From positions 2,852,001 to 2,916,000 of the forward strand of contig CM075998.1 of assembly GCA_038087875.1 (NCBI GenBank): DNA of 64,000 bases, in the 5' to 3' direction. The DNA comes from Malacoraja senta (lineage: Eukaryota). The notes beneath the pieces are model-generated. The model saw nothing but the letters and a program-made list of their open reading frames with translations. It did no database searches and had not been told where the DNA came from. The position numbers and the translations under genes are program-made. Shown here piece after piece: positions 2,170 to 60,900 of the stretch (positions within the stretch are counted from its first letter, which is position 1; each line of letters opens with the position of its first letter).

Positions 2170-3600
2170 GATCATTGGTGCTGGGAATTCCACTTATTTT
2201 AGACAATTCATATAAAGGACATGCAGAATGGGACTGAAAGCACAGTTGTTAAATTTGCAGATGACGCAAAGATATGCAGGAAAGTACGTTGTGAAGTGGA
2301 CGTAAAGAGATTACTAAGGAATAGAGGTAGAATAAGCGAGTGGATGAAGTTCTGGAAAATAGAGCATAATGCGGAAGTGCCCAGTTCAGCAGGATACATT
2401 AAAAAAACATTTTATTCAAATGATGACAGAATGGAGATGTGGATGGACCCGTGTCAGTGCACGATTCACAACAGACTAGTATGTAGGTTCTGCAAGTAAT
2501 TAGAAAAGGTGACAAAACATTGCTTTACTGTGAGGGGAACTGAATATAAAACTGGTGAGTTTGTGCTTCTGCATGGTGGCATCAGTGAGCTCACACCTGG
2601 AGTACTTAGTTTCCTTTTGTAAGGAAGGTATTGTTATTGGTTTTTTTATGGCCATGTCTACCGAGATACAGTGAGAAGCTTTTGTTTGCGTGCTATTCAA
2701 TCAAATCAGATAATACTATACATGAGGACAATCAGACCAGGTACAAGTACAATAGGTAGAGCGAAGAATACTGATGTGCAGAATATAGTTTCTCAGCACT
2801 GTAACGTAACAGTTCCAGAGAAAAAGTCTAATGGTGTAGAGAAAAAGTCAAGGATGTTAGTGTAGAATACAAAGTGCCAGAGTAACTCAGCGGGTCAGGC
2901 AGTAACTCTGGAGGGCATGGAATGGCGACGTTTCCAGTCGGGACCTTCGTCGCACTCGATCCTGAAGAAGGGCCCCAACTCAAAACGTCAAGAACACGAA
3001 GAAGGGTCCTGGCCCGAAAACTCACCTATCAATGACCTCTTGAGATGCTGCCTAACCCGCTGAGTTAAAGCACTTTTTGTTCTACACAAGATTCCAGCAT
3101 TTAAAGTTCCCTGTGTGTTGAAGGATGTTCATGTGATGGAAGCAGTCCAGAGAAGATTTACTGGACTAATGCCCGGAATGCGTTCCGAGATCAGGATAGA
3201 CGGGCTAGCTCATATCTGATGGAGTTCACAAGAGGGGACCTGGTTGAAACGTTCCAAGATCGTAAGGGGCCAGGACTGGGCCAATGTTGAGGGGATGTTT
3301 CCTCATGTGGGAGAATCTGCAACTAGGAGGCCACTGTTTAAAAAAGAGGTTGCCCATTTAATACAGATGAAGGGAAGTCTTTTTTCCCCGCTTGGGGCGG
3401 GGGGGGGGGGGGGGATGAAACTTTGAAATTCTATGTCTCAGAGGGTCTTGAAATGTTTTTAAAGGCAGAGAGAGATTCTTGATGAGCAAGGAACGGAAAG
3501 GTGATGGGGTGGATCAGAATGTGAAGCCGAGGTTACAATAGGAGCAGCACTAACGGAGTGGGTTTGAAGGGCTGAGTGGCCCACTCCTGCTCCTAATTGT
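2170..3600 (+). mobile_element. Old CR1 LINE 3' fragment interrupted (~2640-3118) by younger insertions
   Basis: Degenerate RT C-terminus (VKFADDAKI, VQRRFTGLMPG) and CR1 3'UTR. Confidence 0.7.
2862..3118. mobile_element. Penelope pLTR-derived inverted composite
   Basis: GAGTAACTCAGCGGGTCAGGCAG arm followed by its reverse complement, with two GAAGAAGGG...AAAAC motifs. Confidence 0.65.
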
Positions 3601-4404
3601 AAGCACATGTTAAACGCCTTGTGTGCATGCAAATAGTCGCCTGGGTTGGGCACCATCTTGGAAGCTGTCAGCAAAGCATAAAATGTTGAGCTTTGGCACC
3701 AACTTTCCAAAGAGAAAAGAGGTGGCACTGTATTCAAGTTGTTGTTTACAGCAGATTTCAGGCTGTCAAATGAAGCATTAAGCCATGTCAAATTTCCAAG
3801 TGTATTCTTTTTACGCTGCAATACATTCTAATTTTTGCGACAGTTGCATTTGCTTAGACTGTATTTGATAGGAACAATTACACACGCACACATATATTAC
3901 ATAATCAGTTTATGTAACTCCAATCTGCACAAAGAATGTAAAGAAATCCTTCACCATCTCTGGGAGGTACAAATGTATATGAAAGCTGCATCATTCGCTT
4001 TGCCACATCTGAAAACAATTAGGCATCTGATACATTGCTCATGTTATTGACATTAGTTATGTCCAGCTGGACCATGTAGCACAGTAATGTAGTACACCAA
4101 ATCCCACCGACCACCATTGTAGAATAACCTTGTGTGGCACTTGACAAATGCATTGTGAAAATCAAAATGTCTACATCTATTGGTTGTCTCTTCGACTTTC
4201 AACTACAAATAACAAACTTGTCACACACAATTCTTCCTTTCCAAAATCTGCCCCATTACATTGTGATTTTTCTCACCACCGCCATATTAAACAGCCCCAA
4301 TAACATATTCTAGAGTTTTCCCCCACCACCTATGTGGTTACATAAAATTGGAGAATTCAATGTTCATACTGTTGGGTTGTAAGCTACCCAAGCGGAATAC
4401 GAGG

Positions 4405-14964: not shown

Positions 14965-17900
14965 CTGAAGGAAGAAAAATAATTATTAATGCAGGAACTA
15001 TTTACTGAACAATCAACATTCAGAGTGTACACAAAGAAGGCCAAATGGCTCCTCAGCCTGTTCTATCAATCAATAAGATTATGGCTGATCTGCTCTGCAT
15101 TCTTCTATATCTGTGGTAAGCAAATGAATGAAAGGTTACCAAGTATCTATTTCCCTCGGTCTTAGAAATATTCTAAGATTACCATTTCCACCAAATGGAA
15201 ACAAAGGATGATATGCTGGATGTGGAGGCTAGTGGGGGTGAAGACCAAGGGAACTCTTTTGATGTTGTCTGTGGTGAGGGCAGGAGGCAGAGGAAGCAGA
15301 CATCTGGGAAAAAGATGAAATGCCAGCGAGGGCTCCATCAACCATGGTGGAGGGGAACCCACGTTCCCTGAAAAAGGATATTTCAGAAGTCCTGGAACGA
15401 AAAGCCTCACCTCGGCTTTGTCCTGCCCCTCCTCTCATCAAGCTTTCTTTCCCTCCCCTCCACAATCAATTCGAAGAAGGGTCTCGACCGGAAACGTCAC
15501 CTATCCATGTTCTCCAAGAGATTAGTGTGCAAAAGTAGAGTGCATGGTATTGGGGGTAGGGTATTGACATGGATAGAGAACTGGTTGGCAGCGATGGCAC
15601 CCCACTTCTAAAATCATACCAATCAGTAAAAAGACCCATTAATGTCTATTCCTGGTTCCTGTTAGCCAGTAAACTTTCTATCCATGCTAATATGAAACCT
15701 CCTACACCAAGATGTTTTATCTTCCCCTAATGCAGCACCCTCTGGAAAATTAAGTACAGTATACCCACCATTTTCCTTTTATCGACATTATTTATTTTGA
15801 GATAACTAAACTGGTCAGCTGATGTAATTTTTGATTATGTAGTTATTAAATTATACAGCCTCCCAATTTATTACAAATCAATAACTTTACAAAGAGGAAA
15901 ATATATTTAAAATAAGCTCAGACTGAAATATACAACAATAAATCTTTTCACTTTTGTTGCCTATCTCTACAACATTTATGTTTTTATAATGAAACTTAGT
16001 GCAGATAGAAACATAGAAAATAGGTGCAGGAGTAGGCCATTCGGCCCTTCGAGCTTGCACCGCCATTCAATATGATCATGGCTGATCATCCAACTCAGTA
16101 TCCTGTACCTGCCTTTTCTCCATACCCCCTGATCCCTTTAGCCACAAGGGCCACATCTAACTCCCTCTTAAATATAGCCAATGAACTGGCCTCAACTACC
16201 TTCTGTGGCAGAGAGTTCCAGAGATTCACCACTCTCTGTGTGATAAATGTTTTTCTCATCTCGGTCCTAAAGGATTTCCCCTTAATCCTTAAACTGTGAC
16301 CCCTTGTCCTGGACTTCCCCAACATTGGGAACAATCTTCCTGCATCTAGCCTGTCCAACCCCTTAAGAATTTTGTAAGTTTCTATAAGATCCCCCCTCAA
16401 TCTTCTAAATTCTAGCGAGTACAAGCCAAGTCTATCCAGCCTTTCTTCATATGAAAGTCCTGACATCGCAGGAATCAATCTGGTGAACCTTCTCTGTACT
16501 CCTTCTATGGCAAGAATGTCTTTCCTCAGATTTGGAGACCAAAACTGTACGCAATACTCCAGGTGTGGTCTCACCAAGACCCTGTACAACTGCAGTAGAA
16601 CCTCCCTGCTCCTATACTCAAATCCTTTTGCTATGAATGCTAACATACCATTCGCTTTCTTCACTGCCTGCTGAACCTGCATGCCTACTTTCAATGACTG
16701 GTGTACCATGACACCCAGGTCTCGTTGCATCTCCCCTTTTCCTAATCGGCCACCATTTAGATAATAGTCTACTTTCCTGTTTTTGCCACCAAAGTGGATA
16801 ACCTCACATTTATCCACATTATACTGCAAGATCATGCTTGTGCTATTTTTCATTTGAAATGAAAGGAATATTTTTAGAATGCAGCAAATTTTACAGCTTT
16901 CAACATATATCTCGAGGGAATGTTACATGGATACTTAGCGGGTGGTGGGAGGAGAGACTGATGGTGACCAGAAATACCCAGAGGCTTAAGCAAGTCGTTT
17001 CATATCAATCTATTAGTTCTATGTGCTAAATAATAGTCCACACGCAGGGCTGCAAACATGTCAGAAAATAGAATTCATCTCAAGGGCAACTGATTTTCTT
17101 AAAACATTACATCCACCTGGTCTGTCTGAAGAAGGACCCCGACTCAAAATGTCACCTACAGAGTTTTCTCCAGAGATGCTTCCTGGCCCACTGAATTACT
17201 GCAGCATTTTGTGCCTATTTTTGGTACACACCACCAACTGCAGTTCCTTTTTATTATGTCGGTTTTGTTATCCATTATGTAACATTTTGGACTAAACTAG
17301 CAACACACAAGTAACGAAGTGAGCAAACTTACTCTTGGGCTTGCTATACCTCAGATAAGCATCAGTGTGAACATTGCATTTCTTGTATTATTTCTTATCT
17401 TCCTTTTCCTCTTTTTTTTTAACCACTTACCTCTTCACCTTTTGGAATTCGCCTGCTTGAGATAATGATTATTTTGTCCTCCTTGTCAAAGGTCACAACC
17501 TCTGCCACACAGTTAGGGGCACAGGAATGATTGATATATCTGCACAGTAGACATTTTTTTTCCCCGAGAAAAGAGAAAAGCAGCCAGTCAACATCACAAA
17601 AGTACATATAGAAAAAACAAACAAATTATAATACAATCATGGTTCAGCAGATTTCAAAATATAAAAAGCAATATCGCAAGTTCAACAATTAGTAAAGTTA
17701 CTTCCAGTACTGATGCATAATACTGGGATGTAAATACATTGAGTAGAATGCAAAACAAAGCTGTCAATGTAGTAATAAAAGTTTTAAAATAATTAATTCC
17801 CAAATATCCTATTTATAAAAAAAACATTAATTTCCTTACTAATCAGCAACAAAATAAGGCTCCTTGTCAAAAGTCACAGGTTATAGCAGGGTTCTGATCC

Positions 17901-23900: not shown

Positions 23901-26900
23901 TGCGATCCTCAGGACAGCGTGGATAGTCAGACCAAACATATCCTCTCCTTTAATATAATCAGGAAAAAGTCTCAGCATGTCTGCTTCTTTACGCAGCCGC
24001 ACAATCGGGTCAAGAATTCTGTTCCAAACTCCTAAGAAATGAGAGGATGTGGAAAATACACACTGGTTATTTACAAGTTATGGTTCAACAGCTTAACTAC
24101 CAAAAAATACTCAATTCCAAAATGTTTCACTTTCCCAACCCGTTTGCACTGACTAAAGCATGTCAATGGATCAGCAGCACAACATACGGTGGTATTAGAC
24201 GCACTCTTCCATTATGCTAAATGTACCACAGATATCTGTCCTGTCTGCTATGAAACGGTAGCTGACCACATATGGCAATAATGGAAATTATGAGTAGCAT
24301 TTGAAAATAGAACCAAATAATACATTTTTAACAAGACATTAACAGAATAATAATTTCTATAGATCACAATCATAAAAACAGGACAGAATACAAGGTTGTC
24401 ATTTGACACATTGAATCTGCACCCGTGTGCTTAAAGAACATTACAATTAGTAAATATAGTCAGGAATAAACAATTCCAACACTATAAATTTAAGAGTGAA
24501 AGCCAACTGCATAAACTGCCCTGAAGCTACATAGGATGAGATACTAACATTTAAAATAACACAAGTGGGAGAGGAAGTATTGCATTCAAAGTGATATGGC
24601 ATGTTTCACAAAATAATATTAAGAGGCAGGCATCCTGTTGACATTTTTGGAGTTAAGGATTGGATGGGGCCATCAAGTATTTCTAAACTGCAGCAATATT
24701 TTAGCTCAATATTTATTCCGAACATGATTTGGTCATATTTTACCTTGTGGGGTCCAATCAGTAACAATCAAATCCTCATGTCCTTGTTCAATAATCTGGA
24801 CATCAAACTCGGGTTTTCCATTAGTATCATTGATGGTGCAGTGGTAGCAGCAACGCCTGTTGGTGTATCGCATACTCCAATAAATTCGAGTCGCTTCAAA
24901 TCCAATTGGATAAAGAGCGGTTACACTGTGGAATTCCTGCATCTGATGGGGGAGCAACTGACCGATGGTATGAAATATCAGGCCGCCAACCCTGAACATA
25001 TGGCTGCGTTTGCCACGCTGCACAATGCTAGCAATCTGCTTCACCTCATCTCTCTGAATGTAGACGCGGCGGTAAACGGCAAAACAACGAATTTCCTGTT
25101 CATTTGCCCCTTTCAATTTATGTTGACTGCAGAGCATGGTCTTGTCCTTAAAAAACATACACCGGGCACGGATAGCACAAGCAAAATGGTAGGTGTTTGG
25201 GCACCGAACCCGATGACAACCGGTAGTGGCACCGGTCTTTTGACAAAAAGCACACTTTGTGGTGAGTCCCCTGTGGAAAGCCACTTCCACATTTATCAGT
25301 GCCCCTGCCTGAGTCTCATAAACTTCAGAGGACCACAACGCACAGTTTAGATGGACCCACAAATCCAAATCCAGATTCAAGAGTCTTGCTGGCCCATCTG
25401 TTGTTCCATCACCATCTTCATGACAGAAGCAGCACCGCCGAGTGTCCTTGGGCATGGGGTCTGGTTTTAATGATGTCCCCAGCTTCTGAATGAGTTCTTC
25501 AATTTCATGTTGTGAGACATGTTTAAATTTCCCTTTATGAAATATGAGTTTAAATTCCAAACGCTTCCAACGGATTCCTCGCCATCTCTTCATCAGTGGT
25601 TGAGGTTCTTCAAACTGCTTTTCATCCAGTGGAAGAGGATGCTTGATCTTTGGTGATTCAATTGATGGATCAGGCTTACTTGACTCTGCTGGAGTTCCAG
25701 GTGATGATATACTTGGGGATGAGGGTGGAGAACTCTCTGGCTGTATTATGGGAAGCTGGTGAACATCGAGTATAGACATATTATTGCTATAATGATGCAC
25801 CACAATTCTTTCCTTGGTTGGACATTCTGAGGAAGTTTCCTGAAGAGAGAATAGCAATAGAAGCCATTATGTTTTGAAACAACATAAGTTACCAATATAT
25901 TGAAAACAACAATCGGTTTCTCACTTTAAAAAAAGCGTCATTCAAATCTTTTTGCACAGCGACTCCGCGGCAACACTGGCTTCAGCCAATTTTCATTCCC
26001 CAATGCATCTGATTTGAAAATTCTTGACCTTATCTGGTAGTCTCTCCACATTTTGCTCTCCATACCTCTGCAACCTCTTCCCACTCTAGCTAAGCTCACA
26101 TTGCTAATTGCCTTCTGCCAAGGGATGTCGTTTATGTTTGCAGACCATTTAAATACTTTTAAGTTCAGTCACAAGTGTCAACATCAACTGTAAGAAATGC
26201 ACCAGCCAATCTTTGTACACTAAGTTCCTAAAAAGATCAATGATAGGACCAGGTAATTAGTTTTAGTGATGTTGAATGAAGGACATTGTGGATACCACCT
26301 TTAATTTGTTTAAGTTCACAAGACAACCCATTAGGTTTCTGTTTAGTGTGTCATCTGAAAGATCTGCCACAGTACATTGTAGCACTGAATAAGTACTGCA
26401 TTAAAGTGATGCGTATATTTTTCAATTCACATCTCTGGAGACAGAATTGAAAGCTTTCTGACCATCAAGATTGCTACCAGCTGAGTCATGGATGTCACTG
26501 AAAACATGAACGCTTTCTTCTTTAAAAAACAACTTCTCTACTGTTCTCAAAGTGTGTTTGAAAATCATGTTGGTGTAGCAACCAAATTTCATCTGGCAGT
26601 GTGGGGTCTTGACCATCAACCACTGTGACATGTAAGTGGATTAAAGTTGAACATTTTACTAAATGATCAATCCAGCTGTCAATGACATCATCATATACAA
26701 TTGTCAAGATACCTTCAGGCGGAAATAAACTAAAAAGAGCAATTGTAGTTAATTTCAGGAAAATTAGGAAACTTCTCCGAGTACTTAAGCAAGCTCCAAG
26801 AAATCAGGGATTTCCATAACCATCGCCAGTCATACTTAAATATCCCTCTCCCCATCGAAATGTATCCCAATAGCCACATGCTCGTCAGCTGGGTGTATAC

Positions 26901-33949: not shown

Positions 33950-36900
33950 CTTTGATCCCGTTGGAGGTGGCAGAAAGGACTAGAGGGACTCTGTCTCTGT
34001 TGCGACTCGGGGGAAGGGGGAGCAAGGGCAGAGCTGCCGGGTACCGAGGAGACACAAGTGAGGGCCTCATCTATGATGGGAGAGGGGAACCCCCCTTCCC
34101 TGAAGAATGAGAACATCTCGGATGTTCTAGTATGGAACACCTCCTCTTGGGCGCAGATGCGGCGTAGACGGAGGAAATGGGAGTAGGGGACAGAGTCTTT
34201 GCAGGAAGCAGGGTGGGAAGAAGTGTAGTCGAGATACTTGTCTTTGGTTCGAAATATATTTGTTTGAAGCTCGACCAGCATACAAAATGTTTCACCTAAA
34301 GTCCTTGACTTTGATTACCAATATATTCTCAGAATTATTTTTGAGTTCAACATGTTAGACTATTTCTGTCTGCAAGTCTCCACTCACCTGCGTTCCAGAC
34401 AGCATTTTCATCACTATTGATCCATTAATTTGCTTTGACAGACCCAAACTACTTTTTTGACTCACTGCTTTTATCAGATGCCAACGAACAAGATTTAACT
34501 TTGGAAGGCAACAGAAAACGCTCTGTCAGAGACTTAATTCAGACTTTACAAAGCAGTGAGATAACTAAACAATAGCAGTGACACAATACTTGCAAACACA
34601 GGATGAGCCCATTCAACTCATCGTGTTCATGCTGGCACCCAGTGGAACAATCCCATTCATCATCTTATTTGCAGAGGTACAGGAAATGTATTCACTCTCA
34701 CATATCCATCAACTCCTCTTTCGACTTTAAAGCGTGGAAACAGTATCTTTGGCCCACCGAGTCCACACGGACCAGCAATTAACCCCGTACACTAGCACTA
34801 TCCTACACACTAGGGACAATTCACAATTTTTACTGAAGCCAATTAACCTACAAACCCGCACGTCTTTGGAGTGTGGGAGGAAACCCACGCAAACACAGGA
34901 AGACAGCACCCGTAGTCAGGATCGAACCCGGGTCTCTGGCGCAGTGAGGCAGCAACTACAGCTGCACCACTGTTTATTATTCACCGCCAAATTTATTATT
35001 CTTTCATCATTTTAGTACCATTTAGCTGCACTAAAGGGCAATTTATTCTAACCAATTAACCTACCAACACAACTTTAGGATTGTGGGAGGAAACTGAAGC
35101 ATTCAGTGAATGTGGTCAGAGAGAGAATGAGCAAACTCCACACAAGGTTGGGCCAAAGGGCCCATTTCCAAGCTGAATGACTCAATCGCATTATTCTGCA
35201 GGGAAAGCTAGATCTTTTACTCCTTATCTCAGCAAATTATGCTAAACGCAACCATAAGTGTCATTTCAGTCATTTACCTTGTACAGAAGCTGCGAGTAGT
35301 AATCGGGAACACTATCCAGAACTGCATTCCCAAATGATCCTTTCAGTTGGTTCTTGCTATTGAAGGGACTGCTCCCAAATGGAGGAAAGAGGCCAAAATT
35401 CACCTCAACGGTAGGTTCCATCAAAGGGAGGAGGGACAGTTGCTGGGGGGAATAAAAATGATAATAATGCCCAAAATAGAGAGAAGCACATCAACAGCCT
35501 GGCATGTAATCTACAGATTCACTCATGAAAAATCATGTATTTACCATACATACTCTTGCAATCCTTTATGTTAAATGACATTTAATTCTCATATTCTATT
35601 TCGTTTTCCCCCTTTTCATTTCAACTCAATTTATTATATTTAGCTTGGTTCACCATGAATCTGAACAAGTTCTTCTTGCCCTATAACCTGACATCAGGGA
35701 GGTACTATGCCATGCAAAGCTCACATGAAAAAGATTAGAGAATTCTCTGTAATGGATTGATATGACTTTACTGTCTGATCTCAGTCAAAGATTCCAAGTG
35801 ATACTAAGTTAATTAAAATCATGGACTGATACCTGCTGCAACTGCTTCATGAGGGCATCTGTACTTTTTATTCCCTCTTCCTTTTTACTCTTCTTTCGTG
35901 AGTTGGTGCCTCTGTCATTTGCTTTTTGTGTCCTTTTCGATTTTGGAGCCAGGTTTTTCTTGCTAATTTCTTGAAATTCCTTAATCTTGCATAAACAAAA
36001 AAAAACAAATTAAACTCAGCTTCACACCTCAGCATTTTCACTCAAATACTCCAAAGCACAAACAAAATCCATAAAATCAGGTATGATTAAGTTCATTTTA
36101 TCCATACTAGATTACTAAATGTGATCCCAAAGCAAGAGAAGAAAGAGCCAACTGCGCTTTGCCATTTCTCTTCAATATTATTTTGAACGTTTATAGAAAA
36201 TCTCTATCATTGGATGAAGAGAAAGCTTGAAACTAAAAAAAAACGCTGATGTGCGTTTGTGTGTGAATATTTCCTGCATTTACTTTTTTATTTTAGATTT
36301 CCAGTACCTGTACTTTTCTCGATTTTCAACTTTGCAGACATAATTGTAAACTAACCTCTGGATTTCCAGTTGCACCTTGAAGTTTCCGATCTATCATCAC
36401 GGCTTTGCTTTCAATGTGTCCTTTTATAGCTAAGTGAGTTCCATCACCAGAGCGCTGTGCCACAAGCTGCAAGTTCTTAGTGCGCAACAGTTTCTGCAGA
36501 AGCAGTTGACCAGCTTCAGATCTGGGGGCAAGGAAAGACTGGTCCCCTACATTCAAGGCATTGAAGGAGTCAGTATTTAACTCATGTTTTAAGGTTCCCT
36601 CAGAATACCCACAGCGAATTGCCTCAATGTTTTCCTGTTTCACTAAGTGACCTGCACTTGTTGTGTTGGCACCTTTAACAGTACCATCCTGTAAGTTGGA
36701 ACAGCTATCCTGTCTTCCCACGACTTTGTGTACACATTCCTCTTGCCCATTCGTTTGATTCAACAGCGATGATTCTGCTCGCAGTCCAGGGTATTCCTCC
36801 TTTGTGACTTGATTTTGGGGGGATACTGGGAAGTCGAATGTGCAAGCTTTAGTCAAGTCGCTTTGCTCATGCGTCTCCATATTAATTCTAGTTTGTGACT

Positions 36901-39900
36901 CAGTGACAGAATTTGCTTTTTCGCCAGTGCCATGTGGCTTCATTGCCGATGCATCAGATTTAGAATCCAATATCTTCTGATGTATTATCCCAATAGGGTT
37001 TGCCATACAATGAGTACTTTCTTCAGATTCGTGGCTTTTGAGTACTTCTGATTGTGGCTGTACTATTGTTTCCAAAGTTTCATTTTGTAGTGACACATCT
37101 CCTGAATTGCTTTTATTTACCTCAGGATGGAGGATTTGTGAACGAATGCAATGAGCTTGGGCAGATACCGATTCATTTGTTGACCCTGCGTTCTGCCTTG
37201 CTTGTTTGTTTTGAATTAGATGGGCCATCTCTTGAGGTTTCCCTCCATGTTCAGCTTTAATTTGCTGCACATAAACCATGCCTGGACGAAGAGGACCCAA
37301 ACCCATCTGTTGACTGGTCACTTGAACTGGACGTAGGCCTGGATGCTGCTGTTGAAACGACTGTGAAGTCATGATGCTTTGCATTCCCTGCCTTGGATCT
37401 CCCACTGTTCCATGCTGCTGAGATGTCGCTACACGCACGACTCCTTGCAAACCGAGACCATTATTCTGTTGGAGATTTGTAACAGATGGGTGTACACGTC
37501 TCATTAATTGATTTTGATGAGCCATTGATCTCTGCTGCCCTGCGACACCTTGTTGCATTGCTTGTTGCACTGATATCACCGATCGTGTTTGTAGATTCTG
37601 ATACATCATGCCCGGAGACTGTCCCAGCCCCACTGCGCTCTTAGGCATGTTCTGAATCTGTGGTTGGTTACGGTCCTGTCCCATTACGCACTGGGGAGGC
37701 AGCAATGAATCTTGCTCCATTGCAATTTGGGCTCGTTGCAGTCCCTGACTCAGTGTACCTGGAGGCGGCTGCTCTTGTTGCTGCTCTTGTTGCTCTCCAC
37801 TAATTGTACCTAAACTCTGAAACCGCTGTCCTTGCCCCATTGTACCTGGAGACTGCCTCTGTGCCATAAAGCTCTGCAGTTGCAGCTGTCCTTGACTTTG
37901 CCCAAATATGCTCTGTGAACGCAGTTGCTGCTGTCCTTGCTCCTGGTTCACCATAGTCTGGGATAGCTGTTCTTGACCAGACAGGTTCTGGAGTTGTCCT
38001 TGTCTGGCTGCACCTTGTGTCTGCAATTGCCATTGTCCCATCAGGCCATGGAGTAGTTGCTGCTGTTGCCCATGCCTTATCCCAATCAAACATTGGGGCT
38101 GCTGCTGTTGCTTTGCCTGCCCCATTGGGGCTTGAGATTGAGATTGTCCCATCCCAATTGTGCCATGGGGTTGCTGTTGTGCTATTCCCATTGTACTCTG
38201 AATTTGGAGCTGCTGTTGTGCCACTCCAATTATACCAGGAGATTGCGTTTGCTGTTGTCCAACTCCTGCCAGACCGAGCCCCTGAGGCTGCTGACCCATT
38301 CCCACAGCTCCCTGGGATGACTGCTGCTGTACTACTCCGTGCCCCAAAGGGCCCTGATGAGGCTGTTGTCCTGTGGCACACAGGGTCTGGGGATGTTGTA
38401 CCATGGTGCCGTGGGTCTGGAGATGTTGTACAATGGCGTTGTGTGTCTGGGAATGTTGTACCATGGCACCCATGGACTGGGAATGTTGTACCATGGCTCC
38501 CTGGCTCTGCGGATGATGCACCATAGCGCCCTGGGTCTGGGGATGTTGTCCACCGGTACCCAGGGACTGGGGATGTTGTACCATGGCACCCAGGGACTGG
38601 TGATGTTGTACTATGGCACCCAGGGACTGGGGATGTTGTCCACCCGTGCCCAGGGACTGGGGCTGTGGTACCATGGCACCCAGGGACTGGGAATGTTGTA
38701 CTGTGGGGCTCTGGGTCTGGGGATGCTGACCCCCGGTGCCCTGGAACTGGGGATGTTGTATCATGGCGCCCTGGGACTGGGGGTGTTGTCCGTCAGTGCC
38801 CGGAGTCTGGGGCTGTTGCCCGTCAGTGGTCTGCGGCCGTTGGCCCACAGTGCCCTGGGACTGGTGCTGTTGTCCATCAGAGCCCTGACCCTGTTGCCCA
38901 CTGGTGCCCTGTGATGTGGGCTGCTGTCCGTCGTTGTCCAAAGGCTGTTGTCTGCCAGTGCCCATGGATGGGGACTGTTGTCCTTGTATCTGGGGCTGTT
39001 GTCCACTGGTGCCCTGGGTCTGGGGGTGTTGTCCATCTGTGCCCAGGGTTTGGGGCTGTTGTCCGGTGCCCTGAGATGGTGGCTGTTGTCCGTCGGTGCC
39101 CTGCAATGGGGGCTGTTGTCCGTCGGTGCCCCGCGATGGGGGCTGTTGTCCGTCGGTGCCCTGCGATGAGGAGTGTTCTCCATTATTGCCTTGGGTCGGT
39201 GGCTGTTGAGTCGCTGTGTCCAGGGACGAGGGCTGTTGTTCGTCAGTAGCCAGGGACGGGGGCTCTTGTTCGCCGGTGCCCTGCGATGATGTGTGTTCTC
39301 CATCAGTGGTTTGGGTAGGGGGCTGTTGAGTCACGGTGCCCAGTGACTGGACCTGTTGTCCGTCAGTGCCTTGGGTCTCGTGCTGTTGAGTCGTGGTGCC
39401 CATGGACTGGGGCTGTTGTATGCGGGGGCCTAGGGTTTGGGGCTGTTGTTTGCCGGGACCCAGGATCTGGTGTGGTTGAGTCGCAGTGCCTTGGGACTGG
39501 GGCCGTTGACCCGCTGTGCCCTGAGACTGGGGTTGTGGAGCCTCAGTGCCCTGGGTCTGGGGTTGTTGAACTGCTCTGCCCTGGGTCTGTTGTCCTGCAG
39601 CGCCCTGGGTCTGGGCCTGGGCCTGTTGTTCGGCTGTGTCCTGAGCCTGTTGTTCAGCCATGTCCTGGGTCTGCGCCTGTTGTCCCGCAGTGCCCTGGGT
39701 CGGGGGCTGTTGTCCAGCCGTGCCCTGGGTCGGGGGCTGTTGTCCGGCTGTGCCCAGGGCACGTTGACCTCTAATGTCCCGGGTGTGGGCCTGTTGACCG
39801 GCTGTGTCCTGGGTCAGGGCCTGTTGTCCAACTGTGCCCTGGGCCTGTTGACCCACGGTGCCCTGGGTCTGGGCTTGTTGACCTGCGGTACCTTGGGCAC

Positions 39901-42900
39901 GTTGAGCCGCTGTGTCCTGGGTCAGGGCCTGTTGTGCTACTGTGCCCTGGGTCTGGGCCTGTTGACCCGATGTGCCCTGGGTTGGGGGCTGTTGTCCCAC
40001 CGTGCCCTGGGTTGGGGACTGTTGTCCCACCATGCCCTGGGCCTGTTGCCCGCCAGCACCCAGTGGCTGGGGGTGTTGTCCCGTGGTGGCCTGGGTCTGG
40101 TGCTGTTGTCCGTCAGCACCCAGTGGTTGGGGCTGTTGTCCCACAGTGCCCATGCGCAGAGTCTGGGGCTGTTGCCCGCCGATTCCCTGGGTCGGGGGCT
40201 GTTGTCTCACGGTGGCCTGGCACTGGAGCGGTTGTCCCATTCCCTGCCCGATTGTACCCTGTGGTTGGGATGGTGTTTGCTGACCTATAGTCCCATGGGA
40301 TTGGGATGGTGGAGGAGGTTGCAGTGGTTGCTGTGCCATTCCCTGCCCCATTGCTACCTGGGGCTCGGGGGGTGGTGGTTGTGGCTGTGCCTGCTGGCCC
40401 ATTCCCACTGCAGTGAGGGGCAGATGCTCCTGTCCCTGTCCAATTGTGCTCTGGGTCTGATGATGCTGACCCTGGGTCATTGCACCCTGTGGCTGGGATT
40501 GCAGTCCTTGTTCCATTGATACGAGGGGCTGATGCTGCTGCCTTATGTTCTGTGTGATCATGCCTTGGGATGGATGCTGCTGCTGTCCCTGCCCCATTAT
40601 ACCTGGCAGCTGGTGCCTGAGGACGTGCAATGGAGTCTGCTGTCCAATTATACCTTGTGATGCTAAGTGTTGTCCCAAAACATCTTGCGATTGCTGCCTC
40701 ATTATACCCTGCATTCGGGCATGATGGACCATTGTACTTTGCTGCTGACCTTGCAAAGGGGTGGACAGCCGAAGGATGTTGTTCTGCCTGATAACACTTT
40801 GTGGGTGAAGCTGTCCTGAAACTGCTTGAAGGTGATGTTGTTGCAATGGAGTCATTGTTGCCAGCTGTTGACTCTGAGAAACATTCACTTGTTGAGGTCC
40901 TATGAGTCCTTGCTGTTGCAATACAGCATTGGATGTCTGTTGCTGTAAAACTAGATTCTGTTGCTGTTGTTGAGAAGCAAGGACTTGCTGTTGACCTGCA
41001 AGACCTTGCTGATGTGCCAACTGCTGTGCCATAAGACCTTGCTGAGGCCTTGGAGGTTTAGGTTGATTGGCAAGTCCCTGTTGATGGGATTGCTGATGTA
41101 GGAGGCCGCCTTGCTGCTGACCAATTGGAGACATATGCTGTTGACTCATCAACCGTAGGTGTTGCTGTTGAGGTGCCAGACTCTGTTGGTGCGGTGCTCC
41201 TGGCTGCTGCTGCCCCTGACCGATGTGCGGCTGGGGTAGTTGCTGCTGACCTGGCTGGTGTTGTGATTGTACAATAATCCCTTGCTGTTGTCCAATGAAG
41301 CCTTGTTGCTGTTGGCCCATGAGAGCCTGCTGCGTCAATATTGGTTTGTTGCCGACAATATTTTGCTGAGTCGTCGGTTGAAGCTGTCCAATGATATTTT
41401 GTTGTTGTAATTTCCCCATGATGCTTTGTTGCTGAGTTGGCCCAACTAGTCCTTGCTGTTGAACAAGCTGCATTCTTTGCAGCTGAAGGTGTCTCTCTTG
41501 CATGAGTCTGTTTTCATTCGCAAGTGTCTGAGCAGCGGAATTTCCAGGAAAAAAGCTAGTTGGAGTGGCAGAAGATACAGTTGCTGAGGCAGAAGAATAT
41601 TCTTGCTGTTGGGTCACAGCTGAGGTTAAGAAAGTTGGTCCTTGTTGAAGTGGCAGTCGTATATTTCCCGTGTGTCCTATTAGTGTATTTGGTTGTTGCG
41701 ATAATGCTTGGGGTCCAAGGATTGATCCTCCTGGCTGGGCTAGTGCTGCCGATAACATGGGTGTTGCAAGTTTAGGCATTACGCGAGGATTCTGGGATGT
41801 GGCTGTCCCTATCACCCCTGAGGGAGATAAGGAGCATTTTTGCTGCTGTTTATTCCGATATTCTGTCATAAGATTTGTATGTTCCTTTTGCTGTTTGCGG
41901 ACCTGAAACACAATTTTTAGAAAAACTCGAAATTAATACCTTGTTAAAAAAAAACAAAAAAAAAACAGGATAATTTTATAATAACCCACTTAATCGGCAC
42001 AAGCTATATTTTAACATTAATTTCAATGGGAGCAATTCATTTTCCAACCAAATTTACATATTTCGAAGATGTAAATATAATAATTAAAGTTTACTTTCAG
42101 CATTGACAGAACTCATTCCACAAAACGTTGGCAATTTTTTTTCTAATTAGGTAAACAGTTCTATTAAGAGAAATGTTTATGTTAAGACAACAGGTTGAAG
42201 ATATGTACCTGTTTCTATGGAATTTTAAGCAGGGATTTATTGCTTCAGAGAATAAAAAATGGAACTCGAGACAAAATTGATTTCACAAAGGTGTGAAGTA
42301 CATTTTTCAATATATGCCTGTTCCATACACGGAAAGAATACTGAAGGGCTTCAAAAATACATAGGCAAAGCAATAGCAGCCAAACATGCCTTTAAGCATG
42401 TATGGTTGTCTCATCACAAAGGTGGTGATGAATTGGATTTGAAGATAGATGGAACCAACGACTTTCACATACCTGTTAATGCATTTACAATATTACACAC
42501 AGCAACCACTTAGCAAAAAATATTGTTGAATCAAGGTAACAAAGGAAGATACTGGACTAAGTCAACCTTAGATAAAAAGAATCTCTCATCATCAAACCTT
42601 ACCTGATCAAGTTGTTTCTGGATTTTACTTTGTTGCTCTGTAACTCGTTTAAGTTTCTCGGCATCTGCCTCGGGGAACTCGCGTCCCGCTTTCTTGGCCG
42701 TCCGTTGTTTGGCACATAATGCTTTTCTCGACTTTCTGTGGACACCAATCTGCTCTTCTAAAAATTTCAGCTGCATCTGAAGCAGCTGTTGAGTGTGCAG
42801 CAGCCATTCTTCATACTGGCGGTGCTCTGCCTCATCTACAGCGCAAGAACCAAATGTATAATTAGACAACATGCAAGTCTTAATCATTCCCTTGCTAACA

Positions 42901-57900: not shown

Positions 57901-60900
57901 GAAAAATGAACTGGACTGAACCAAATGAATTACTACGATTGATCTGCAATGAATCCAGAATACACACAAGCTCCACTTGTGTATTCAGTTAGTCGTAGTC
58001 ATTCCAGAAGGAGAGCTCTGATAAGATGCTAATGTGTGTATTTTCTTACATTTTGCAGGTTTTCTTTTTAAATCTGTTGCCTCCATTTGTTAATGGTAAT
58101 TTCTTCAAATTATTCAATGCGAACATTTTCATTCACACAATAATGTGAAATGTGATTAAATAGCATTGCCAAGCACAAATGAATTTTGAATAGTTGGAGG
58201 TTAACAAAACAGGTTTTAAAAAGGAACACAAAAGCCCATCCTAACCTACTTTCTGCACAACAGCAATTGAAATTAAACAAGTAAACAGAGTCACTTGCTT
58301 TTACATAGCGCATTATCGTGTCTCTCAGAAATGTCTCAAAGCACTTCACGTACATTACTTTGAAGCACAGTGATGGTAATTGCAACAGCATTTTGCGCAC
58401 CACAAGATCCCTTAAACAGCTTTGAGATCTATGATAGGTTACATTCTACTTTTGGTGCTGATTCCTGGGGGAATATTAGCCAAGATACAGTGACATGGGA
58501 TTTTTACTGACCACCTGAACAAGGAATCATGAAGACCAGAGCTTGACATTTCTATTACTAATTCAGTGCAGCCGCCATTAACGGCCAACCAGAAAGAAGC
58601 CGACATTATTTGTAAGCTTGCTCATTACCTACTGTACCTGTATCTGGGAAGAAAGCATTGGCTAACTGTTGCTGTTGTTGCATCACAACTTGTTGCGTCT
58701 GCTGCATGATGCCCATTTGCGATACAGCCAACTGCTGAGTTGGCAATAACTGCGGTGAGGTCAAATGTTGACTCTGCTGTGAGGCCACTATCTGCTGTGT
58801 TGGATGTTGCCCTGTTGCCACATGCTGCTGCTGTTGGGACATGGCTACATGTGGTGAGGCTCCAAGGCGTTGCTGTGATGCTGTCAATTGTTGCTGCTGT
58901 GAAGATGCAAGGGATCTTGGGATCCCCAACTGATGATGCTGTATCACCCCTAGGATATGTGGCTGTGGCAGGTTTAAATTCTGAGGTGGCCCCTCAAGAT
59001 GCTGCGACTGCTGTGTTGTTGGAAGATGTTGGGAGAGCCCTGGATGAGTCGGTTGATGTGAAACCTCAAGCTGTTGCTGCAGAACTGGAAGGTGGGCCTT
59101 TGGTCCTGAATGCTGCTGCTGTTGAGCAGATATACACTGTGATCCTCCCAACTGCTGCTGCTGCTGCTGCTGCTGCAGTTCCATTTTCTCTTGTTCGAGT
59201 AAATCATGGAGAAGTAGTGGAAGTTCACTTGCCTCCAAAGAGCTCTCCACTTTGACAAGGTCATCCACAGACCGCCTTTTCGGTTCCATACTGGGCACAT
59301 GTTGACACATTTCATCAAGTCCAAATTTAGCCATTGATGGCCGAGACTGGACGACCAGTGGCAACTTGGAAATGATCTGTGTTGAAGATGTGCACGGAAC
59401 ACTTTCTAAATCCACATTCGAATGCTCATTGTTAGGCATCCGTGGAGTCCCATGGCTACCTGAAACAACCGTGCCACTTTGAGTAGATGTCTGTGTTCCA
59501 CTGGTAGTACATGTAGAACTCTGACACAGTGCTACACTTGTGTTGACATTAAGTCCAGTACCCAGACTGAGTAGCATTGACACGGCTCCTCTCTCATCAT
59601 CCCCCTTCGTTGGGCTTTCCGGTTTTATCAGAACCGTCTGAGCCGCAGAAGGATTTGCAACAAACTGGCAAGCTGAATTTTGGGAAACATTCTCTTCAAC
59701 CTTCAATACTAAGTCAAGAGTGGGCTTCGGAGAATTATCAGTAGACGGGGCCCTAGTGGCTGGATCACTGCATTGACTGTTAGTGATCGTTTCCGAGTTG
59801 ACATTATTCACCGACTCACAAGTAATCCTATCAGACGTGGATAGAGTATCTGCAATATCAGATTTAGTTTTTGCTTTTTCATTCTCTTCTTCCTTCGCAG
59901 TCTTTTCTGTATCAGAGCGGCTGATATTATCAGTTGTACATTCACCAGCTGGGCCAACAGCATCCTGATCAGCTAGAATATCCTCATTTTCTTCTGCTTT
60001 CTCATTTGCAGATTCTACTAAACGCAGTTGTTCTGTAAATATGTCCTTTTTGTCACCAGTGTCGAGCTCGGGGTCAGTATAAGCTAATAGATCAAATTCC
60101 TCGCATTTCAGAAGGTCATCGAGGTGGGGATCATTGGTTTCTAGGTTATCAAGGTTACCAAGTTCATCATCGGTCTTACTGTCTGGGTCAAGACTCAAAT
60201 TGGCAAGGTCATCTTCTTCATCTAGCTCTTTTGGTGAATCAAGTTCTTCATCCAAAGCTTTTACAACTGAATCATCGCAAGAGATCTTTCGAGGATCTAA
60301 CTCAGAGTGCTGTCTGACTACACTGGAGATGGATGAGACAGAGTTAAGTGGAAAAGGTACCGTGTTATCCTTCAAGGCGTCAGTGCTGCAACTTGAAGTG
60401 GACGTTGTAGTCGATGAACTAGTCTGAAATGACTGTTGTGCTTCACCCTGTACTGTAGATGCCAATGGATCTTTTGTCTGGATGTGCTGATGGGCACTTG
60501 ATACTTCCACCGAATGAGGTGAAGATGGCAATGGAGCAGAGATATTCTGCTGGGGTAAGAGCGTTATCCCAACTGGTGACTGTGGCAAAGGTGTACTTGG
60601 ACCTCTTGATATGACCTTGCATCCCTGCATTTGATGCACAAATGAACCAATTTCTTGATTTGGTAATGGAAGGCGTGGTCTTGGCTGGGGGCCACGCTGT
60701 ACCAGCTGTGTACCAATGGGTAATCGTTGGGAATTGTGCCTCAGTTCTATATACTGAGGACTCACCGGAATTGGAGAAGCTACAATTTGTTGTTGTGCAT
60801 TTTGAAAAGTGATTTGAGTGGCAATTCTAGGGTTAAGCCCAGCTGTGCTGTTCATTTGCATTGTCATTCCAGGCCTGTTCACATGCAAAGATTCAGGTTG

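Follow-up and report, generated by a model that had tools for sequence, protein, structure and literature searches.

The large glutamine-rich exon of KMT2D (MLL4) of the skate Malacoraja senta, situated in the 64,000-nucleotide stretch of DNA analyzed here (the window), carries a long tandem array of short Gln/Gly-rich units that was not detected in the KMT2D sequences of a whale shark, four birds, a gecko and a python. Judged from its sequence, the array is likely to be an old, in-frame coding minisatellite, whose likeliest role is that of a tolerated, flexible and highly soluble extension or spacer of the disordered Q-rich region; the constraint on its composition and frame is weak.

The KMT2D locus and its large exon

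The attribution of the gene to KMT2D, made previously in a sequence-only reading of the window, was corroborated, and we regard the skate gene as the KMT2D (MLL4) orthologue on the basis of sequence similarity and domain architecture. Its SET domain was more similar to that of KMT2D (4z4p, 73.5 bits) than to those of KMT2C (5f59 and 5f6k, approx. 58.5 bits), an extended PHD finger and FYRN are encoded within a single downstream open stretch, and the top annotated match of the large exon was the KMT2D-like protein P0045 of Rhincodon typus (E-value 3.7e-203). The latter model shares the exon junction QLDQ/VRKQQKEH with the skate gene, and in it the preceding exon and the large exon are contiguous. 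The LLQKLL motif close to the end of the large exon is a conserved anchor: P0005, P0047, and P0055 carry it within a 17-residue segment, and a 13-residue motif of the exon end is common to them and the skate. In a PRKAG1 synteny query, a gene encoding CBS domains was found to adjoin the whale shark KMT2D locus (the corresponding skate neighbour lies outside the 64-kb window).

The exon was confirmed as a single open frame, devoid of stop codons in the coding frame (70 and 44 stops in the two others) and bordered by the acceptor TTTCAG/GT and the donor GAG/GTTAGT. Glutamine constitutes 24% of its residues but nowhere in the exon forms a run of more than 5, and there is no long, Leu-interspersed polyQ tract. 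The opinion that the exon is roughly doubled in size holds for the two sequences with which it was compared here, i.e., those of the gecko (~957 aa) and a bird (~1050 aa), set against 1849 aa in the skate. The coordinates of all distinguished features are summarized in Table 1.

Table 1. Features distinguished within the skate KMT2D locus (positions refer to the window).
Feature	Position	Strand	Remarks
SET-domain exon, inside an open stretch	17422..17625	-	nearer to KMT2D than to KMT2C
Open stretch holding an exon with extended PHD finger and FYRN, downstream	24736..25866	-	Pfam PF13832, PF13771, PF05964
Large Q-rich coding exon	36356..41902	-	5547 nt, 1849 codons, one open frame, canonical splice sites
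LLQKLL motif close to the exon end	36485..36502	-	conserved anchor with bony-vertebrate KMT2D; within a 17-residue segment present in P0005, P0047, P0055
Tandem array, ~62-65 units	38354..40294 (exon aa 537-1183)	-	1.94 kb; TRF, autocorrelation, segmentation
Block C, His/Met/Val-rich, uncharged	38354..38770 (aa 1045-1183)	-	17 His, 0 charged residues
Block B, acidic, 10-residue unit	38771..39370 (aa 845-1044)	-	18 D/E vs 3 K/R
Block A, net-neutral, GT[AV]GQQ[PA]QTQ	39371..40216 (aa 563-844)	-	10 D/E, 10 K/R; several 8-aa variants
Degenerate QQQ-x-hydrophobic-hydrophobic-G-Q units, ancestral	41258..41455 (aa ~150-215)	-	translation compared by eye with P0046/P0047/P0055
Preceding exon	42603..42830	-	contains a 29-residue segment, ends with QLDQ; donor CAG/GTAAGG; 5' end approximate

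Anatomy and divergence of the array

In the array, units with lengths divisible by three follow one another head to tail in numbers far beyond chance, and it thus has the properties of a coding minisatellite. The predominant unit, G-T-x-G-Q-Q-P-Q-T-Q, spans 30 bp (10 aa). A unit of 11 aa (33 bp) had been proposed previously and has to be corrected: TRF returned a period of 30, the protein autocorrelation peaked at lags 10, 20, and 30, and segmentation yielded 10 aa in 50 of 72 segments and 11 aa in none, the other units being of 8, 9 or 12 aa (the motifs quoted in the earlier description have 10 letters themselves). On the other hand, its estimate of approx. 1.9 kb for the whole array agreed with TRF and segmentation, and the observation that unit deletions keep the frame was borne out, since the length variants of 8, 9, and 12 aa are all frame-preserving. 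The search with a degenerate core pattern gave 35 matches, all of them within positions 38394-40219, while 0.15 were expected by chance. The GC content of the array is 63%, compared with 49% in the remainder of the exon. Depending on the block, Q and G account for 23-31% and 13-17% of residues, respectively, with 0-1 aromatic residues; Q runs inside the array are of 2-3 at most and Leu is placed at unit ends only. The array was also considered as a cluster of SQ/TQ motifs, i.e., ATM/ATR targets; this candidate was rejected, as the 37 S/T-Q dipeptides showed no enrichment over shuffled sequences (33.4 +/- 4.5).

The division into three chemical blocks is real, and their borders are located almost exactly where they had been placed before. 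Higher-order periods of 114, 84, and 54 bp were distinguished in block A and one of 120 bp in block B, while in block C two 10-residue motifs alternate as a 90-bp superunit. The mean Kyte-Doolittle values are -1.21, -1.66, and -0.69 for blocks A, B, and C, respectively, block B being the most hydrophilic of the three.

The units are strongly diverged, with DNA identities of only 60-75% and pS of ~0.44; pS is lower (0.28) in block C, which is the youngest block. Among units, pN/pS was 0.70 in the reading frame (bootstrap 0.60-0.82; 0.88 for block C), while the two shifted frames gave 1.25 and 1.03, although values below 1 between paralogous units are a rough measure, as the pairs are non-independent, gene conversion may be at work and synonymous changes approach saturation. 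Mismatch rates at codon positions 1, 2, and 3 were 0.27, 0.34, and 0.42, and there is no stop codon in frame along the array, whereas the two alternative frames contain 9 and 11. The strong synonymous divergence, together with the frame-specific pN/pS, indicates that the array is old, is probably translated and is no assembly artefact.

The same exon in other vertebrates

In the homologous whale shark exon (L001, with no N across the site), the flanks of the array are joined directly, and 1 unit stands against ~613 extra residues in the skate, albeit this sole other cartilaginous fish in the comparison is represented by a partial model of a gap-ridden region, in which collapse or loss may have occurred. 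The whale shark tail aligned to skate aa 1177-1262 with a score of 193, compared with 119 at best inside the array, and the deletion of skate aa 563-1175 raised the score of the global alignment with the whale shark from 2064 to 2175. The unit pattern had no match in the KMT2D sequences of the whale shark, the four birds, the gecko and the python. The single unit in the whale shark and the lack of any in birds, gecko and python argue that the array is a lineage-specific gain, in agreement with the earlier supposition.

It had also been stated that general occurrence of similar repeats in bony vertebrates would speak against this interpretation, and this is partly the case. In birds (Lamprotornis, Willisornis, Aptenodytes and others), ~20-25 copies of an 11-aa unit, QQPGVMGQxSM, are present near the start of the same exon, in the region which in the skate holds the degenerate ancestral units. 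The bird array is an independent in-frame amplification of a Gly/Gln unit; it differs from that of the skate in the Met/Val character and length of the unit, in its position (after QERQLQRMQL), in its size (~250 vs ~650 aa) and in the lack of blocks. The whale shark exon contains units of yet another kind, QA-rich and of 13-15 aa (39 and 45 bp), running into assembly gaps, and the length of the KMT2D polyQ differs among primates (PMC8121095). The exon is thus expansion-prone in several vertebrate lineages. Such a hot spot is relevant to annotation, assembly and the reading of length variation, and it is at this very exon that the gene model of the whale shark is interrupted.

Other searches were less informative. 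When the skate exon was aligned by BLASTP with the gecko, bird, and P0062 sequences, low-complexity smearing prevailed and only the two ends provided anchors. The HMMER search with exon aa 650-1849, in a library without full-length vertebrate KMT2D, gave unrelated 10-aa repeat proteins and short LLQKLL fragments. The word-index search with exon aa 1000-1500 found nothing among subjects limited to 0.55-1.75x the query length, a rule that excludes full-length KMT2D (at least 5000 aa). In the literature searched, no paper was found that deals with repeats in the KMT2D of birds or cartilaginous fishes.

Origin and possible role of the array

The array probably started from one pre-existing G-x-x-G-Q-Q-P-x-x-Q unit in an already degenerate Gly/Gln periodic region and grew by slippage or unequal exchange after the split from the whale shark lineage. 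The growth would have been staged, the units of blocks A and B having arisen before the 90-bp superunit of block C. In this way, the "prion-like" region would have gained ~610-650 residues rich in Q, G, T, and P, punctuated with Pro, almost free of aromatic residues and mostly unstructured. The predicted lack of structure is consistent with the single-sequence AF2 model (mean pLDDT 41, mostly coil), which is weak evidence for disorder; only the Ala-rich, Pro-free units of block A (aa 655-718) formed a weak helix (pLDDT 62-68). No Pfam family was matched when the exon was scanned in three parts. At the level of prediction, the earlier description of the region as disordered is therefore upheld.

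Human KMT2D is connected with Kabuki syndrome and cancer, and its Q-rich disordered region is needed for condensates. The role of its prion-like domain (residues 3561-4270, with the polyQ tract 3898-3974) in condensates, invoked in the sequence-only reading, is present in the literature, which links it to mechanosensing as well (PMC13584762, citing Fasciani et al. 2020). The skate array belongs to the same large, disordered, Q-rich exon region of the same gene, but it differs from the human domain in several respects. The latter has long polyQ with Leu and a propensity for helix or coiled coil, whereas the array has Q runs of 2-3 at most, a strict 10-aa period and no Leu heptads, almost all of its units contain Gly and Pro, and its site in the exon is a different one. 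The further suggestion that the array stands in place of a long pure polyQ could not be maintained, since it is inserted at a site of its own, which the Q/L-rich stretch precedes by ~220 aa, and the Q runs of the whale shark are similarly short (7 at most) with no array present. We infer that the array would act as a spacer or extension and that the polyQ tract was not replaced.

An alternative, which seems unlikely but fares best among those considered, assumes a functional block copolymer under selection, in which the three blocks re-tune self-association or partner binding and offset the short polyQ. The real block make-up with its hydropathy gradient, the in-frame pN/pS below 1, the persistence of the array for long enough to reach the observed pS, and the condensate-driving role of the human prion-like domain and polyQ tract (PMC13584762) are all in line with it. 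However, with no aromatics, almost no Arg, Pro in most units and such short Q runs, the array would be expected to favour solubility over cohesion; the whale shark has equally short Q runs and no array, the constraint is weak, in block C in particular, and local amplification produces blocks of itself. Either selection or biased gene conversion could account for the block structure and the high GC content, and the spacer interpretation is compatible with both.

Somewhat more doubtful is a broader scenario, in which the length or valence of the KMT2D disordered region was recurrently selected for, with lineage-specific repeat chemistries giving distinct condensate properties. If so, the three-block 10-aa array of the skate, the Met/Val 11-aa array of birds, the QA-rich 13-15-aa units of the whale shark and the mammalian polyQ would all meet the same need, and the block arrangement of the skate would result in KMT2D condensates with distinct, measurable material properties.

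It is also improbable that the array behaves as an exitron, being spliced from most mature mRNAs and thus missing from the main protein. Splicing from a weak donor at 40749 (AAG/GTCAGC) to a site resembling an acceptor at 38371 would indeed excise 2379 nt in frame, but both score poorly on a rough matrix, by which no strong splice sites around the array and no internal donor of at least 5 were found inside the exon. Moreover, the constraint is frame-specific, in-frame stops are missing and the whale shark and bird annotations show the homologous exon without interruption.

The whale shark is a urea-retaining elasmobranch. As it nevertheless lacks the array at this site, a general adaptation to the urea/TMAO-rich elasmobranch cytoplasm, which had been put forward as a speculation, is very unlikely; the presence of the array in a cartilaginous fish is its sole support from the sequence, and the bird exon was expanded as well, with no such osmolyte load. 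In the literature, nothing was found on urea/TMAO and disordered regions in elasmobranchs, and the osmolyte papers retrieved had no bearing on the array. An assembly artefact inflating a short repeat is hardly credible, for although repeats are error-prone and gaps interrupt the corresponding exon of the whale shark, the skate units are 25-40% diverged, form ordered blocks with higher-order periods and keep the frame intact over 1.94 kb in a window free of N, while false duplications would be near-identical.

The array can be set beside other repetitive proteins. Wheat HMW glutenins are storage proteins built of short Q/G/P-rich tandem units, and the skate array shares this make-up. The designation "glutenin-like" is, however, justified by composition only, because the glutenin units (of PGQGQQ or GYYPTSPQQ type) contain Tyr, the array has none, there is no sequence relationship and no glutenin was among the library matches. 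The lengths of Q-rich tracts in primate KMT2D and in RUNX2 were proposed as tuning knobs (PMC8121095, PMC7738678), which resembles the skate array as regards length plasticity of Q-rich sequences in transcription and chromatin regulators, but these tracts are homopolymer or dipeptide runs, whereas the minisatellite of the skate repeats a complex unit of 30 bp. The GRR of Drosophila Argonaute-2 consists of Q-rich tandem units which are lineage-specific, fast-evolving and hypervariable within species (PMC4978909). Like the array, it is part of a disordered stretch in a conserved regulatory protein, its composition is kept while the unit sequence is not, and its function is unknown; unlike the array, it is N-terminal and belongs to another protein and pathway. 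The high divergence between the skate units suggests that their turnover is slower than that of the GRR. Natural repeat variants of this kind provide test pieces for whether it is the length of Q runs, the spacing of Leu, the total length or the blocks of charge that matters.

A coding minisatellite in the large Q-rich exon of KMT2D

In Malacoraja senta, the large Q-rich exon of KMT2D, a gene for a medically important chromatin regulator, carries an unusually large coding minisatellite that is specific to the lineage and has a period of 10 aa (30 bp). The array is described here as a sequence feature, and any function assigned to it is a proposal. The exon is a single open frame, with acceptor TTTCAG^GT and donor GAG^GTTAGT (the caret marks the junction); it is free of stop codons, whereas the two remaining frames contain 70 and 44. 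Its product of 1849 residues is composed of 24% Gln, with Q runs of at most five.

The identity of the gene was indicated by the downstream SET exon, which matched the KMT2D SET structure 4z4p with 73.5 bits versus 58.5 bits for KMT2C. An extended PHD finger and FYRN are encoded in the stretch 25866-24736, and the final KMT2D exon terminates near 14.9 kb of the window. The top database relative of the large exon was a whale shark protein model, [quoted passage not shown] (P0045; E 3.7e-203), in which the junction …QLDQ^VRKQQKEH… is the one predicted here between the preceding and the large exon. No Pfam family matched the large exon. A second large Q-rich open KMT2D exon (58609-61092, minus strand; 828-aa open stretch), present also in P0045, is located upstream. 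In the intron that separates the SET exon from the final one there is a 275-aa open frame (16098-16922, minus strand), which by eye looks like the C-terminal portion of a LINE reverse transcriptase.

The use of Tandem Repeats Finder indicated arrays with a 30-bp period between 38383 and 40237, as well as higher-order periods of 90, 120, 114, 84, and 54 bp, and protein autocorrelation peaked at lags 10, 20, and 30, confined to exon residues 520-1180. Residues 505-1195 were segmented by dynamic programming against a consensus unit, which gave 72 segments: 50 were 10 aa long, the remainder 8, 9, or 12 aa, and none 11 aa. The period of 11 aa (33 bp) given by the sequence-only reading was therefore wrong (its own written motifs have ten letters), whereas the rest of that observation was borne out. 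A degenerate 20-nt unit core produced 35 matches, every one inside 38394-40219, versus 0.15 by chance. The GC content of the array reaches 63% (GC3 61%), compared with 49% (GC3 42%) in the rest of the exon and approximately 40% in introns, and the codons GGC, ACC, and CCC are preferred (38354-40294); such a high GC content may fit a minisatellite that is recombination-active or prone to biased gene conversion.

Position and composition of the large exon, the repeat array, and its neutral (A), acidic (B), and uncharged His/Met/Val-rich (C) blocks
Feature	Window position	Strand	Exon residues	Units	D/E	K/R	His	Mean hydropathy
Large Q-rich KMT2D exon	41902-36356	minus
Array proper	40294-38354	minus	537-1183	~65 by segmentation
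Block A			563-844	typically GT[AV]GQQ[PA]QTQ	10	10		-1.21
Block B			845-1044	one typical 10-aa unit	18	3		-1.66
Block C			1045-1183	two alternating 10-aa units	0	0	17	-0.69

Age, translation, and origin of the array

DNA identity between the array units is only 60-75%. When 49 ten-codon units were compared in pairs, the synonymous difference came to about 0.44; in block C it equals 0.28, which makes this block the youngest. The in-frame pN/pS among units, a rough measure given non-independent pairs and synonymous sites near saturation, was 0.70 (bootstrap 0.60-0.82), versus 1.25 and 1.03 for the same units in shifted frames. Within the array there are no in-frame stops, while the two shifted frames contain 9 and 11, and the mismatch rate rises from the first to the third codon position (0.27, 0.34, and 0.42). 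Judging from these sequence properties, the array is real and old, and is probably translated.

Excision of the array as an internal intron is improbable. The only candidate sites, on the minus strand, are a donor-like one at 40749 (AAG^GTCAGC) and, 2379 nt away and in frame, an acceptor-like one at 38371 (…TGTGTGCCACAG^G); both are weak according to a rough scoring matrix. Splicing 40749^38371 would drop the array together with about 150 upstream residues. A never-translated segment is improbable, since it would show no constraint specific to one frame, and so is an assembly artefact, which would yield near-identical copies. The reading of the array as an SQ/TQ cluster was tested and ruled out.

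As for the origin of the array, a Gly-hydrophobic-Gly-Gln periodicity, in degenerate form, runs through the entire centre of the exon, and one variant of this sequence was probably amplified via slippage or unequal exchange. Blocks A-C would then have been made by local higher-order amplifications, as suggested by the periods, the blocks, and the divergence of units.

Distribution of the array and expansion of the exon in other vertebrates

The unit pattern gave not a single match in any other KMT2D sequence obtained (four birds, a gecko, a python fragment, and a bony-vertebrate C-terminal fragment), versus 34 loose and 18 strict matches in the skate. In the whale shark locus (L001; GCF_021869965.1, NC_063372.1), the homologous site reads …QGIGQHLTQSPMGQQPPQGPLGQGMPQQQSSQAAVGIGQQ… and is continuous, since L001 21943-32331 contains no N. 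The tail of this sequence scored 193 against skate residues 1177-1262, versus 119 for the best match inside the array, and the global alignment score increased from 2064 to 2175 once skate residues 563-1175 were deleted. One whale shark unit therefore equates to about 62 skate units. On the sequences compared, with the whale shark as the only other cartilaginous fish, the array is by parsimony a gain of the skate lineage that postdates its divergence from that of the whale shark.

Further along, the whale shark exon has coding units of its own, 39 bp and 45 bp long (L001:32167-32668), the latter being 97% identical and QA-rich, with QA dipeptide runs. Two successive gaps, of 10 N and 500 N, interrupt these units, with non-coding sequence beyond, and for this reason the exon is considered incomplete in the assembly, which probably broke on a young repeat. 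The annotated gene model stops at the gaps ("partial").

In at least three groups of birds, distant orders among them (starling, antbird, and penguin, plus further assemblies), the 11-aa unit QQPGVMGQxSM is repeated approximately 20-25 times near the start of the homologous exon (bird fragments P0046-P0053, e.g., residues 127-399 of P0047); a literature search found no paper describing this array. The gecko has about five units of this type, interspersed with polyQ, and the skate and the whale shark have about seven degenerate units in the same region. In primates, the total KMT2D polyQ length is variable (PMC8121095). The exon product is about 957 aa long in the gecko and about 1050 aa in a bird, versus 1849 aa in the skate, and the earlier description of the skate exon as roughly doubled is fair. 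The Q-rich exon of KMT2D is expansion-prone in general and has expanded independently in other vertebrates.

Possible role of the array in the disordered region

According to one report (PMC13584762), a prion-like domain (3561-4270) and a Leu-interspersed polyQ tract (3898-3974) drive condensation of human MLL4. In contrast to that tract, the skate array has Q runs of 2-3 at most, Gly and Pro in nearly every unit, a single aromatic among 647 residues, and almost no Arg, i.e., none of the MLL4 grammar. Because of this, the array would most likely extend or space out the disordered region as a soluble, flexible segment rather than serve as a new cohesive module.

The array is situated about 220 residues downstream of a Q/L-rich stretch, which by eye matches the gecko's Q-run region, and the whale shark has equally short Q runs without any array. 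It is thus an insertion, and the previous proposal that the repeat stands in place of long polyQ does not hold. A general elasmobranch adaptation to urea/TMAO, also put forward from the sequence, is unlikely, since the array is absent from the whale shark and the homologous exon has also expanded in birds. The comparison with glutenin applies to composition and to nothing beyond it.

A single-sequence AlphaFold2 model (mean pLDDT 41) was coil except for two helices: a weak one at residues 655-718 (window 39750-39940; pLDDT 62-68), formed by Ala-rich, Pro-free units, and a short one at residues 746-760.
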